From NCBI GenBank assembly GCA_965240325.2, contig OZ251226.1, forward strand, positions 186,001-250,000: DNA of 64,000 bases, in the 5' to 3' direction. This document shows, in pieces, positions 57,906 to 60,784 of this stretch. The number at the start of each line of letters is the position of its first letter. Within the stretch, counting starts at the first letter, position 1. Both the position numbers and the translations under genes were made by a program. The notes under the pieces are model-generated. The model was not told where the DNA came from and searched no databases. It saw only the letters and a list, made by a program, of their open reading frames with translations. This stretch comes from Rebecca billardiae RCC1528. Lineage: Eukaryota; Protista; Haptophyta.

Positions 57906-60368
57906 ATGCTCGGGCTGTTAGGGCGGTTGGCGAGCACCAGTGTGGCTACATGCCCGCGTAGCGCGTTTAGGCTGCGGGTGCGCATGCCGCCTTCGCCGGC
58001 TCTCGCCTGTGCTGCGCAACGGGCGAAGTTGCATGCTGGCGGCCAATCACGCCGGCCGGACAACAAGATGATCAACCAGCAGCTCACGGGTGCACGTGAC
58101 GCGGAACGCATCCTCGAAGTGTGCGCTGCGTATGGCCACGCGTTTGACAGGGTTAACGAAGCCACCGCCATCTCTCGACTGGGTCGCAACGCGCGCACGT
58201 TGCGCGGCCACGCGCTGCGCACCGACAAGCGCTTTGGCGCCCTGCTCGCGCGCGTGGAGCGGCGGCTGGAGGGCACGGCGGTCGACGGCTCGCCGTATGG
58301 CGCCCGCCACATGGCCAATCTAGCGCACGGCATGGCCAAGCTGCGGCCGACCAAGTGTGGTGCCGAGCGCGCATTTGGCGCGATCGCGCGGGAGGCCGAG
58401 GCGCGCGTGGGCGAGTTCAATGCGCAGGACCTGGCCAACACGGCGTGGGCGTACGCCACAGCTGGCGTGGACGCACCCACGCTGTATGGCGCGATCGCGC
58501 GGGAGGCCGAGGCGCGCGTGGGCGAGTTCAATGCGCAGGACCTGGCCAACACGGCGTGGGCGTACGCCACAGCTGGCGTGGACGCACCCGCACTGTATGG
58601 CGCGATCGTGCGGGCGGCCGAGGCGCGCGTGGGCGAGTTCAAGGAGCAGGACCTGGCCAACACGGCGTGGGCGTACGCCACAGCTGGCGTGGACGCACCC
58701 ACGCTGTATGGCGCGATCGCGCGGGCGGCCGAGGTGCGCGTGGGCGAGTTCAAGGCGCAGGGGCTGGCCAACACGGCGTGGGCGTACGCCACAGCTGGCG
58801 TGGACGCACCCACGCTGTATGGCGCGATCGCGCGGGAGGCCGAGGCGCGCGTGGGCGAGTTCAATGCGCAGAACATGGCCAACACGGCGTGGGCGTACGC
58901 CACAGCTGGCGTGGACGCACCCACGCTGTATGGCGCGATCGCGCGGGCGGCCGAGGCGCGCGTGGGCGAGTTCAAGGCGCAGAACATGGCCAACACGGCG
59001 TGGGCGTACGCCACAGCTGGCGTGGACGCACCCACGCTGTATGGCGCGATCGCGCGGGCGGCCGAGGCGCGCGTGGGCGAGTTCAAGGCGCAGGAGCTGG
59101 CCAACACGGCGTGGGCGTACGCCACAGCGGGCGTGGACGCACCCACGCTGTATGGCGCGATCGCGCGGGAGGCCGAGGCGCGCGTGGGCGAGTTCAAGGC
59201 GCAGGGGCTGGCCAACACGGCGTGGGCGTACGCCACAGCTGGCGTGGACGCACCCACGCTGTATGGCGCGATCGCGCGGGAGGCCGAGGCGCGCGTGGGC
59301 GAGTTCAATGCGCAGGAGCTGGCCAACACGGCGTGGGCGTACGCCACAGCTGGCGTGGACGCACCCACGCTGTATGGCGCGATCGCGCGGGAGGCCGAGG
59401 CGCGCGTGGGCGAGTTCAATGCGCAGAACATGGCCAACACGGCGTGGGCGTACGCCACAGCTGGCGTGGACGCACCCACGCTGTATGGCACGATCGCGTG
59501 GGCGGCCGAGGCGCGCGTGGGCGAGTTCAATGCGCAGGGGCTGGCCAACACGGCGTGGGCGTACGCCACAGCTGGCGTGGACGCGCCCACGCTGTATGGC
59601 GCGATCGCGCGGGCGGCCGAGGCGCGCGTGGGCGAGTTCAAGGCGCAGGGGCTGGCCAACACGGCGTGGGCGTACGCCACAGTGGGCGTGGACGCACCCG
59701 CGCTGTATGGCGCGATCGCGCGGGAGGCCGAGGCGCGCGTGGGCGAGCTCAATGCGCAGTCGCTGGCCAACACGGCGTGGGCGTATGCGACGGCTGCCCA
59801 GCACATGGAGCATCTGCAGCTCGTGCTGTCCCTGTGCGAGCGGCTCCTTGCTGAGCCTGGGCTGCAGGCGCAACTCGGAGTGGAGGGCCATGTCAATGTG
59901 GCGCAGGCACTGCTCACGCTGCACGTCGATCCACGCCTGCCCGTTGGCACAGCACGCACACGTGTGGAGACGATGCTGGCGCAGTGCCTGGGTCACCAGC
60001 TGCTTCGTGACGCAGCTTCACAGGCGGTGCGCCCGTCGTCATCGCAGCGGGCGCTCTCTCGCGCGCTCGCAAAGTGCGGCTGGGCGCACGAGGAGGAGGT
60101 GCGCATCGGCGAGGGCGGGCTGCTCGTCGTGGACATGGCGTGCGCCGCCTCCAAGGTGGCTGTGGAGTACGATGGGCCGTCGCACTTTGTGACGGACCCG
60201 TGGACGGGCGCGCAGCGGCTCAACGGGCCCAGCCAGTGGAAGACGCGCGTGCTCAAATCGCTGGGCTGGCAGGTCGTGCGCGTGAGCTACAAAGACTACA
60301 GCAGCGTATCTGGCTCAGCCTCGAACAATGCACGCTTTGCCGAAGGGTTGGCACGCAACTTGGCCTAG
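57906..60368 (+). CDS. OPR/HPR-type helical-repeat protein with 13 near-identical 37-aa repeats and a C-terminal RAP (PD-(D/E)xK-like) domain; intronless; organelle-presequence-like N-terminus
   Basis: Repeat unit EF[N/K]AQ[D/G/N/E/S]LANTAWAYATAGVDAPTLYGAIAR[E/A]AEARVG. RAP: SSSQRALSRAL...EEEV...VVDMA...VAVEYDGPSHF...NGPSQWKTRVLKSLGWQVVRVSY. N-terminus MLGLLGRLASTSVATCPRSAFRLRVR. Confidence 0.92.
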   Translation: MLGLLGRLASTSVATCPRSAFRLRVRMPPSPALACAAQRAKLHAGGQSRRPDNKMINQQLTGARDAERILEVCAAYGHAFDRVNEATAISRLGRNARTLRGHALRTDKRFGALLARVERRLEGTAVDGSPYGARHMANLAHGMAKLRPTKCGAERAFGAIAREAEARVGEFNAQDLANTAWAYATAGVDAPTLYGAIAREAEARVGEFNAQDLANTAWAYATAGVDAPALYGAIVRAAEARVGEFKEQDLANTAWAYATAGVDAPTLYGAIARAAEVRVGEFKAQGLANTAWAYATAGVDAPTLYGAIAREAEARVGEFNAQNMANTAWAYATAGVDAPTLYGAIARAAEARVGEFKAQNMANTAWAYATAGVDAPTLYGAIARAAEARVGEFKAQELANTAWAYATAGVDAPTLYGAIAREAEARVGEFKAQGLANTAWAYATAGVDAPTLYGAIAREAEARVGEFNAQELANTAWAYATAGVDAPTLYGAIAREAEARVGEFNAQNMANTAWAYATAGVDAPTLYGTIAWAAEARVGEFNAQGLANTAWAYATAGVDAPTLYGAIARAAEARVGEFKAQGLANTAWAYATVGVDAPALYGAIAREAEARVGELNAQSLANTAWAYATAAQHMEHLQLVLSLCERLLAEPGLQAQLGVEGHVNVAQALLTLHVDPRLPVGTARTRVETMLAQCLGHQLLRDAASQAVRPSSSQRALSRALAKCGWAHEEEVRIGEGGLLVVDMACAASKVAVEYDGPSHFVTDPWTGAQRLNGPSQWKTRVLKSLGWQVVRVSYKDYSSVSGSASNNARFAEGLARNLA
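58377..59793 (+). repeat. Coding tandem array, exact 111-bp period, 13 units, no indels
   Basis: The Leu/Met codon before GCCAAC recurs from 58431 to 59763 (= 58431 + 12 x 111). Confidence 0.97.
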
Positions 60369-60784
60369 TGTCGTCGTCGTCGTCGTCCTACTGATTCTAT
60401 ATGATGGCCCGCGGTGCAGGGCGGAGCGCGCAGCGTGGAGCCCGCACCAGCGGGCCCGAACAACGTTTCAAAAAGATCTTTGATCAAGAAAAAAGGGACG
60501 GGGGACGATTTTCATGGCTGGAGGAGACCGAGTTTCGAATTTTGAGACCCTCTCTAACATGCATCACGGCCGAAAAAGGTCGCGCCCACGGCAAGTTCAT
60601 AGTAAAGCGTGGAGTGACGCCCGTCCAAAAAACTTCACGCCCTTTAGGATCCCTAACGTAACGAACCGTTACAAGCGATTTTTTCGGCCAATGAGATTGC
60701 AGCAAGGTCCAAGGAGCGATGACGTATCTAGATAGAGATTGCCGCGAACCGATGTGACCATGTACGTCCCTTGAATCAGTTGAA

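Follow-up and report, generated by a model that had tools for sequence, protein, structure and literature searches.

The question raised by this locus is whether a protein built from nearly identical helical repeats reads RNA through the few residues in which its repeats differ from one another. How proteins of the HPR, OPR and FASTK kinds choose their RNAs is an acknowledged open question, and to our knowledge the members described so far are too degenerate for the statistical approach by which the code of the PPR proteins was cracked. A review of December 2025 describes both the HPR-RNA code and its relation to the RAP domain as uncharacterised (PMC12691811). The gene considered here lies in the window, which is the whole stretch of 64,000 nucleotides of DNA from the haptophyte Rebecca billardiae RCC1528 that was analysed, and an earlier note on this DNA had described its product as a TALE/TALEN-like protein in which OPR/HPR repeats are fused to a RAP domain.

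Layout of the gene and regularity of its array

The features of the gene are the following, in positions of the window.

57906..60368, + strand: gene of the HPR-RAP protein, a complete intronless open reading frame of 820 amino acids plus stop (ORF listing)
57906..58046, + strand: N-terminal residues 1-47, disordered, Arg-rich, with zero acidic residues (pLDDT <50)
58062..58373, + strand: degenerate N-terminal helical hairpins, residues 53-156, the solenoid cap (DSSP helices 53-166)
58374..59816, + strand: array of 13 units of 111 bp (37 amino acids) each (Tandem Repeats Finder, unit table, Pfam DUF1601)
58392..59726 (58392+111k), + strand: codon 7 of each unit, E or A, within helix B
58419..59753 (58419+111k, k=0-12), + strand: codon 16 of each unit, N or K, the N-cap residue directly before helix A
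58428..59762 (58428+111k), + strand: codon 19 of each unit, D/G/N/E/S, the third residue of helix A
58431+111k, + strand: codon 20 of each unit, L, or M with N19, adjoining codon 19
59817..60074, + strand: C-terminal helical linker from the array to the RAP domain, residues 638-723 (DSSP helices 634-723)
60090..60362, + strand: RAP domain, residues 729-819, with an alpha/beta PD-(D/E)xK-like fold (Pfam, DSSP strands 729-794)

The AlphaFold2 model of the 820-residue protein is confident (mean pLDDT 90.8, pTM 0.84) and consists of a continuous solenoid of hairpins plus an alpha/beta domain. On this model DSSP resolves each array unit into a hairpin of helix B, a 3-10 turn and helix A, and in the hairpins of residues 53-156 the alignment of homologues shows the consensus motifs of the family to be kept. 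The first 55 residues contain 10 R+K against 1 D+E, and residues 1-47 look like a putative organelle presequence, judging by their composition; the N-termini of homologues are either of the mitochondrial type or of the signal-peptide type. An exact-sequence look-up of the protein returned no record, and tblastn found no second copy within the 64-kb window, where a TrpB exon neighbours the gene. A run of short DNA fragments contained about 8% of the words, and its coverage of the window was limited to flanks, a downstream high-copy element and two short fragments of the array.

Tandem Repeats Finder reports one tandem array at 58376-59796 with a period of 111, 12.8 copies, 95% matches and 0% indels, which bears out the earlier description of an indel-free 111-bp period; cut from 58374, the array gives 13 in-frame units of 37 amino acids. 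Units 0-11 differ from the consensus by 0-6 of 111 bases, and unit 12 departs from it in its last 7 codons. Across the 13 units codon 16 is N7/K6 and codon 19 is D3 G4 N3 E2 S1, and the ordered 16/19 pairs (ND, ND, KD, KG, NN, KN, KE, KG, NE, NN, NG, KG, NS) match exactly the list drawn up previously. The E/A toggle reported alongside them is equally real, split 7:6 at codon 7 and for the most part coupled to codon 16, E occurring with N and A with K in 11/13 units, but a fourth variable codon had been overlooked: codon 20 is L or M, with M seen only beside N19.

Units 0-11 have 17 segregating sites, of which 14 are non-synonymous and 3 synonymous, and the variants present in at least three units are all non-synonymous and all in codons 7, 16, 19 and 20. 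With 5.4% of the sites, codons 16 and 19 account for 39% of the nucleotide diversity, a share reached by 4 of 100,000 permutations, and the four variable codons together hold 58% of the diversity among units (0 of 100,000 permutations); omega is 7.9 for codons 16 and 19 against 1.1 for the remaining codons. A diversity-generating retroelement was considered as the source of the variation and rejected, as the variant bases are not adenine-specific and the one source of reverse transcriptase noted in the window, a Copia element near 18.7 kb, lies about 40 kb away.

An HPR solenoid followed by a RAP domain

The array matches the Pfam model DUF1601 with 79.4 bits against a cut-off of 25, and the protein matches RESC6 in sequence (PDB 8fn4_6, E 1e-24) and in fold (Foldseek E 2.7e-13, TM by target 0.74-0.77). 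Foldseek also matches the RAP/HPR chains of the T. gondii mitoribosome, chains of the Chlamydomonas mitoribosome such as 7pkt_O and, among models, FASTKD1/4/2/5, Tbc2, Raa3 and Arabidopsis RAP. The repeats are thus of the HPR kind, being tandem 37-residue helix-turn-helix units with two DSSP helices per unit across the array, which match both a curated repeat model and solved HPR proteins. Of the double assignment to OPR/HPR made earlier, the HPR half holds and the OPR half falls, for OPR units have 38-40 residues with a PPPEW motif, whereas the unit here has 37 and the corresponding stretch reads A-N-T-A-W. In the Pfam scan of the 820-residue protein no PPR family and no TALE family appeared, with PPR10 a weak fold match only; FAST_1, which is reported for homologues, is absent from the Pfam results of this protein at E<=1, and an NCBIfam search of the protein returned noise only. 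The protein is therefore an HPR (DUF1601/RESC6-type) solenoid followed by a RAP domain, encoded by a nuclear gene, and its membership of the FASTK/RESC6/OPR-RAP superfamily, which is of the organellar RNA-binding kind, is supported.

That a RAP domain follows the repeats is confirmed by a match to PF08373 at the C-terminus (31.2 bits against a gathering cut-off of 24.2, residues 753-800), in a region that also gives weak Pfam matches to DUF559 and MTES_1575. DSSP places strands at 729-794 with flanking helices, which is the PD-(D/E)xK-like alpha/beta arrangement, and in Foldseek residues 309-818 align with FASTKD4, and residues up to 818 with the models of FASTKD4/5 and Arabidopsis RAP. Searched by itself against PDB sequences, the C-terminal part had the T. 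gondii RAP protein as its sole match, a weak one. E754 is conserved in 53/53 sequences, and D756, H760, K779 and R781 are also present. The column in which 48/53 sequences have the family Asp holds V741, with D743 two residues later on the same strand, and in the phmmer alignment D743 falls opposite the Asp of 9g6k_LJ, a RAP protein of T. gondii.

HPR proteins of apicomplexans and other eukaryotes (Hillebrand et al. 2018, PMC6212722) have in common with it the 37-residue helix-turn-helix repeat and often a C-terminal RAP domain, and they act in organellar RNA metabolism; in vitro, an HPR protein binds to RNA and does not bind to DNA (PMC6212722). The mitoribosomal HPR/RAP proteins of T. gondii (PDB 9g6k, 9i05) match the window protein in both sequence and fold. 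Alveolate HPR tracts are short, with a mean of about 6 repeats, and degenerate (bioRxiv 10.64898/2026.01.22.701003), whereas here there are 13 repeats with about 95% DNA identity and variation restricted to four codons. The earlier statement that degeneracy is the norm for such repeats is true of alveolates and green algae, but dozens of homologues of the haptophyte or pelagophyte type are equally regular, so that the gene is one of a class. The best match in both sequence and fold is trypanosome RESC6 (GAP1; PDB 8fn4, 8fni; PF26188), a subunit of the guide-RNA-binding complex, which has an F-x-A/P-Q-x-L-x-N motif in the same register and whose label PF26188 is also carried by homologues of the window protein. 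RESC6 differs in its divergent repeats and in acting within a multi-subunit complex. We know of no repeat-variable pattern in RESC6.

The Chlamydomonas NCL family (NCC1, NCC2; Boulouis et al. 2015, via PMC8635915) resembles the protein in joining a repeat array, of 7-12 units in NCL, to a RAP domain. Its OPR-RAP paralogues are clustered and fast-diversifying with a highly conserved central region, and NCC1 and NCC2 acquired new RNA targets through single substitutions (PMC8635915); they are, however, green-algal OPRs of 38-40 residues with PPPEW, while the window protein is a 37-residue HPR of the haptophyte or pelagophyte type that lacks this motif. The human FASTK family (FASTKD1-5) has a similar helical N-terminal region plus RAP, with FASTKD1 a full-length fold match (E 2e-17), but its repeats are too degenerate for a consensus and its identity to the window protein is just 10-14%. 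Within it, FASTKD5 is an endoribonuclease in vitro (PMC12687428).

Likenesses extend beyond the superfamily to the PPR proteins (those with the two-residue code, the Rf-like proteins and the designer consensus PPRs), which are alpha-solenoids with one hairpin per unit and have candidate specificity residues at or just before the start of helix A. The two-residue PPR code lies at positions 5 and 35. In PPRs, as here, such residues vary within an array, are conserved between orthologues and have an elevated omega, and the natural HPR array resembles the engineered consensus scaffold; the repeat length and the sequence family are different. TAL effectors are bacterial type III effectors, fused to a nuclease in the engineered TALEN form, and their repeats of 33-35 residues bind double-stranded DNA with variable residues 12 and 13 in the inter-helix loop. 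They too consist of near-identical tandem repeats with few repeat-variable residues, but here the period is 37 residues, the variable ones lie at the helix N-cap and first turn, and there is no relationship in sequence or family. The label TALE/TALEN-like is thus apt as an analogy, for a constant scaffold with few variable residues, and not as a statement of kinship.

Positions 16 and 19 across the family and how they may be read

A homologue search gave 656 homologues, and a second one 8264 cluster representatives at E<=0.001. Near-identical arrays recur in about 66 homologues, whose sources are haptophytes, pelagophytes and marine metagenomes, and in these 66 the within-protein entropy peaks at position 19 (1.64 bits) and then at position 16 (1.35 bits). 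Related arrays occur in fusion with an RRM, an RluA-type pseudouridine synthase or a peptidase U32 domain, and the array of a pelagophyte homologue contains an assembly gap. In three homologues with old repeats (pS 0.23-0.27) omega is 0.23-0.47 for the scaffold and 1.2-1.8 for codons 16 and 19; on this codon comparison the scaffold of the three is under purifying selection and the two codons are not. The 16/19 pairs are non-random, with a mutual information of 0.42 against 0.14 in within-protein shuffles (0 of 300 reach 0.42), and the association recurs in a second, more divergent set (0.49 against 0.32).

Four orthologue groups retain the ordered string of 16/19 pairs at repeat identities of 57-91%, and conservation at position 19 is 0.84 between orthologous repeats against 0.33 within a protein. 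Of the seven groups picked automatically, three are judged not to be orthologues because their pair strings differ, and including them dilutes the contrast statistics. Under equal weighting of the groups position 29 reaches the score of 19 and 16, and in the more divergent replicate set positions 6, 13, 33 and 36 come close to these two in variability. Taken over the family, the sequences make both position 19 and position 16 good candidates for recognition specific to each repeat, and DSSP together with helical periodicity would place both residues facing the groove. The idea of a constant scaffold with repeat-variable residues thus stands for the concentration of variation at a few codons and for the family-wide peaks at 19 and 16, its likeness to TALE being one of analogy only.

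We consider it fairly probable that the protein is an organellar RNA binder of the HPR-RAP kind, and infer that RNA is its ligand, bound with one repeat per nucleotide. The gene would be expressed, and its nucleus-encoded product would most likely enter an organelle through the N-terminal presequence, where the alpha-solenoid of about 17 hairpins would bind one specific segment of single-stranded organellar RNA and the C-terminal PD-(D/E)xK-like RAP domain would then cleave or hold the bound RNA. The 13 central repeats would serve as a constant scaffold, with the repeat-specific information mainly at the N-cap (16) and first turn (19, with 20) of helix A, in places that are topologically equivalent to the PPR code positions. 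At the DNA level, unequal crossing-over or gene conversion would recently have amplified the array or made it homogeneous, with differences at the variable codons being kept or renewed.

The variation may instead carry no code, if the array arose recently through tandem amplification and gene conversion in a paralogue family of fast turnover, in which a few founder units with tolerant, solvent-exposed helix-cap residues were shuffled by recombination. This is unlikely in our judgement. In its favour, synonymous divergence among the units is just 0.03-0.05, omega outside the hot codons is about 1.1, and the four-gamete test fails for site 48 paired with sites 55-58, at a distance of just 7-10 bases. 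In divergent relatives several other positions come close to 16 and 19 in variability, and the family-rare pairs used by this array (KG, KD, KN) fit neutral shuffling equally well as a new specificity. Positions 16 and 19 are moreover the N-cap and N3, where capping preferences alone give some covariation; yet in the homologue set a T or S in position 16 goes together with G or A and not with E, which is the opposite of a capping box. Nor does neutrality sit well with the purifying selection that exempts codons 16 and 19 in the old-repeat homologues, with the ordered string conserved by orthologues or with common variants that in this array are all non-synonymous.

The remaining readings are less likely still. 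The nearest relatives with solved structures are parts of large complexes and not proven readers of sequence, the best structural matches being subunits of RESC, of mitoribosomes and of the Polytomella ATP synthase (ASA2), so a structural or assembly subunit of an organellar complex (mitoribosome, RNA-editing-like or ATP-synthase-like) that binds protein or RNA backbone without reading sequence, with an inactive RAP domain, is conceivable but improbable. FASTKD4 is reported to be without nuclease activity (PMC12687428) and the first family-conserved RAP Asp is displaced here by two residues, but E754, D756, H760 and K779 are retained, the same arrays are fused to RNA-modifying and RRM domains, and a fixed partner would leave near-identical repeats with repeat-specific residues unexplained. 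It is more doubtful that the array, diversifying fast, directs a RAP/Vsr-like nuclease at viral or selfish-element nucleic acid outside the organelles, in defence or genome conflict: omega above 1 at the variable codons and the weak matches to the restriction-endonuclease-like DUF559 and MTES_1575 would agree with this, while the presequence-like N-terminus and the action of all characterised relatives in organelles would not, and the strings kept by orthologue groups speak against a general arms race. Barely credible, finally, is an assembly artefact, or an untranscribed pseudogene open only because GC-rich repeats lack stops. All six frames are indeed open across the array (ORF listing), and the pelagophyte homologue has its gap, but significant matches in Pfam, in the PDB and among homologues over the whole length, the unique N- and C-terminal parts included, come from the + frame alone, as does a confident model, and the units hold distinct combinations of variants with zero indels.

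Implications for the HPR family and for marine algae

The search of the literature on DUF1601, on RAP and HPR proteins in haptophytes and pelagophytes and on TALE-like or identical repeats found no published description of a near-identical HPR array of this type. The array fixes the scaffold and varies a few residues, and orthologues keep the order of those residues. A constant scaffold and order-conserving orthologues make the question of a code directly testable by binding experiments and paralogue comparisons. As a tentative extension of the organellar RNA-binder reading, we speculate that HPR proteins of the haptophyte or pelagophyte type may be natural and widespread consensus-scaffold RNA readers, in which the residue pair 16 and 19, perhaps under the influence of 20, 23 and 29, would read one nucleotide per repeat, with interchangeable effectors such as the RAP nuclease, RRM, pseudouridine synthase and U32 or FAD enzymes.

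If this is true, such genes would let the unsolved HPR/OPR code be read directly and would supply a new programmable scaffold for RNA targeting. Should a code exist, these proteins would be RNA binders of a new, programmable class with a nuclease built in, and they would help to account for the control of organellar gene expression in ecologically dominant marine algae.

An HPR-RAP gene and its organellar relatives

A single open reading frame on the + strand encodes a protein of 820 aa and contains one tandem array (58376-59796), for which Tandem Repeats Finder gives a period of 111, 12.8 copies, 95% matches and 0 indels; the exact 111-bp period without indels described in the earlier note therefore holds. 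Owing to its GC-rich, repetitive composition six of six frames are open through the array, so that an open frame is by itself no evidence of a gene. In Pfam, the protein matches the 37-residue repeat model DUF1601 at 79.4 bits (cut-off 25) and RAP at residues 753-800 at 31.2 bits (cut-off 24.2), a profile match that bears out the RAP domain noticed after the array; the Vsr-like or restriction-endonuclease-like models DUF559 and MTES_1575 match weakly. The repeats had been called OPR/HPR. Since the unit is 37 aa long and lacks the PPPEW motif, only heptatricopeptide repeat (HPR) stands; the related octotricopeptide repeat (OPR) is rejected, and this is an HPR-RAP protein, of a family and architecture already known. 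The gene has no introns, and no second HPR-RAP copy was found in the 64-kb window.

The gene and its surroundings
55271-56312, + strand: upstream neighbour, an intron-split tryptophan synthase beta-chain gene
57112-57170: intergenic (CT)n microsatellite, 29.5 copies, some 740 bp before the start codon
57906-60368, + strand: HPR-RAP gene
60350-60617: segment directly past the stop codon, where X1, a DNA run of short fragments, shows contig depth raised about 7-fold (122-142 vs about 19 in the flank) and several variant contigs and loose ends map, suggesting a dispersed repeat or transposon fragment

By sequence, the closest solved relative is trypanosome RESC6 (8fn4_6, E 1e-24), followed by RAP proteins of the Toxoplasma mitoribosome. 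A confident AlphaFold2 model from 53 sequences (mean pLDDT 90.8, pTM 0.84) has a disordered stretch (residues 1-47), unbroken helical hairpins (53-723) and an alpha/beta domain (729-819). Foldseek matches it to RESC6 (E 2.7e-13, TM by target 0.74-0.77), mitoribosomal RAP/HPR chains of T. gondii, helical-repeat chains from the mitoribosomes of Chlamydomonas and Polytomella, ASA2 of Polytomella and PPR10, the last a weaker match; among reviewed proteins, it matches FASTKD1 over its full length (E 2e-17), then Tbc2, FASTKD4/2/3/5, Arabidopsis and rice chloroplast RAP, and Raa3. Every Foldseek match is a protein of organellar RNA metabolism or of an organellar complex. Gene anatomy, fold and family membership are thus established.

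Within RAP, E754 (53/53 sequences), D756, H760, K779 and R781 are conserved. At the first family Asp column (Asp in 48/53) the window protein has V741; D743 lies two residues further along the same predicted strand, and phmmer pairs it with an Asp of a T. gondii RAP protein. The N-terminus is basic and carries no acidic residue; the N-termini of homologues are either mitochondrial-type or signal-peptide-type, which fits more than one destination organelle.

Variation within the array and across the family

Cut from 58374 onward, the array forms 13 units of 37 aa (units 0-12). Units 0-11 differ from their consensus at 0-6 of 111 bases, and the last 7 codons of unit 12 are divergent.

Variable codons of the unit (k = 0-12)
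Codon 7, 58392+111k, + strand: E in 7 units, A in 6
Codon 16, 58419+111k, + strand: N in 7 units, K in 6
Codon 19, 58428+111k, + strand: D in 3, G in 4, N in 3, E in 2, S in 1
Codon 20, 58431+111k, + strand: L, or M solely where codon 19 is N

The earlier note had picked out codons 16 and 19 and the E/A toggle, all of which are present, but missed codon 20; the few synonymous differences it reported are likewise found, at 3 of the 17 segregating sites in units 0-11 against 14 non-synonymous ones. Every variant shared by at least three of these units is non-synonymous and falls within codons 7, 16, 19 and 20. Codons 16 and 19 hold 39% of nucleotide diversity in 5.4% of sites (matched by 4/100,000 permutations) and the four codons together 58% (0/100,000 as high); these hot codons were chosen post hoc from the data, and the family analysis independently points to positions 16 and 19.

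A word-indexed search returned 656 homologues at 35-56% identity, the named ones from haptophytes (Chrysotila, Pavlovales sp. CCMP2436, Phaeocystis), pelagophytes (Aureococcus, CCMP2097), a diatom and Plasmodiophora; cluster representatives number 8264 at E<=0.001 and 990 at E<=1e-30. The window gene is one among many. HPR tracts have recently been described as short and degenerate (bioRxiv 10.64898/2026.01.22.701003), and the earlier note called such repeats normally highly degenerate, but many homologues carry near-identical 37-aa arrays too, so that the regularity belongs to the clade and not to this gene alone. Among 66 homologues with at least 5 similar units, within-protein entropy is highest at position 19 (1.64 bits, top in 19 proteins) and next at position 16 (1.35 bits, leading in 11); a second set, of 36 more divergent proteins, again ranks position 19 highest, with 6, 13, 36, 16 and 33 close behind. 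The same clean pattern occurs in P0112, a homologue from Pelagophyceae sp. CCMP2097 (GCA_026770575.1, locus L004). There, at L004:10400-12100, the public gene model takes a 1084-N assembly gap inside the array for an intron, so that the protein annotated with 484 aa is truncated and its actual array must be longer. Our literature searches found no account of repeat regularity across the clade, nor of how positions 16 and 19 behave.

Pairing, conservation and selection at positions 16 and 19

With simple, W-anchored unit calling (also used for orthologues), 915 units from 117 proteins have mainly N, K, T or S at position 16 and E, G, D, N or A at position 19, the most frequent pairs being KE, ND, NE, NN, NG, NA, TG, SG and TA. 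The pairing is strongly non-random: mutual information is 0.42 bits vs 0.14 +/- 0.014 in within-protein shuffles (reached by 0/300), and 0.49 vs 0.32 in a replicate set, the second-highest excess of all position pairs.

Part of this covariation could come from helix capping. In the model, the unit comprises helix B (35-37 and 1-10, including position 7), a 3-10 turn (12-14) and helix A (17-30), with position 16 as the N-cap and position 19 as the third residue of helix A; in the classic capping box, an N-cap N or D is combined with E or D at N3. T and S at position 16, however, go with G and A and not with E, the reverse of a capping box. Helical periodicity predicts a buried face of L20, A24, W25 and A28 and an exposed stripe of Q18, residue 19, N22, T23 and A26, which would place the variable residue at the surface amid invariant polar residues.

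Between orthologues the ordered pairs are kept: 8/9 in P0001/P0048/P0050 (repeat identity 57-64%), 6/8 in P0032/P0038 and 6/6 in P0076/P0098; the FAD-domain fusion group P0082/P0085/P0100/P0103 (about 65% identity) keeps its string as well. In pooled pairs, identity at position 19 is 84% between orthologous repeats vs 33% among repeats of one protein, the largest contrast of the 37 positions; when every group is given the same weight, positions 29, 19 and 16 lead, in a statistic diluted because 3/7 of the groups, which were picked automatically, do not consist of true orthologues. PPR code positions were found by this same signature, varying along the array and conserved between orthologues. 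The window protein has KG, KD and KN, pairs rare in the family and compatible alike with new specificities or recent neutral shuffling.

Divergence among repeats of one array (omega, non-synonymous vs synonymous rate ratio)
Three intronless metagenomic homologues (L001-L003): synonymous divergence 0.23-0.27; omega 0.23-0.47 for the scaffold, 1.2-1.8 for codons 16+19
Window array: synonymous divergence 0.03-0.05; omega 1.1 for the scaffold, where changes outside the hot codons are too few to reveal constraint, 7.9 for codons 16+19

In these three homologues, purifying selection keeps the repeats uniform at the protein level, whereas change at positions 16 and 19 is either unconstrained or driven. 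The array in the window is either young or was homogenised recently. In it, sites 55-58 (codons 19-20) fail the four-gamete test against site 48 (codon 16), only 7-10 bases away, while codons 7 and 16, 28 bases apart, are mostly still linked; this implies either very fine-scale conversion or recurrent change of codon 19.

RNA links and domain fusions

Related arrays are joined to other domains, though some of these fusions may be merged gene models.

Array fusions
P0024: RRM and RAP
P0007: RRM, no RAP
P0110: RluA-type pseudouridine synthase and SAP
P0082, P0100: FAD-binding monooxygenase domain
P0121: peptidase-U32 domain, perhaps from a merged gene model

RNA-hydroxylation factors occur in the U32 family. 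These fusions look like a modular repertoire of targeting array plus effector, and such an array with exchangeable RNA-acting domains would fit an RNA-directed role. PbHPR1 binds RNA and not DNA (PMC6212722), FASTKD5 but not FASTKD4 cleaves RNA in vitro (PMC12687428), and single substitutions give the Chlamydomonas OPR-RAP proteins NCC1 and NCC2 new RNA targets (PMC8635915).

We infer that the window protein is probably imported into an organelle, where the helix-A face would bind single-stranded RNA; residues 16 and 19 (and 20) would make the repeat-specific contacts, and RAP would cleave or anchor the RNA. The array has probably grown recently by unequal crossing-over or gene conversion. P0001, P0048 and P0050 carry runs of one pair (KE KE KE NE KE KE RE NE ..), which, if a code exists, would imply an RNA target that is of low complexity or resembles a homopolymer, for instance a tail. 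The HPR code has been called uncharacterised (PMC12691811). The value of these observations lies in the class of regular arrays and not in a single gene, since with such a class the question of an HPR/OPR code becomes tractable.
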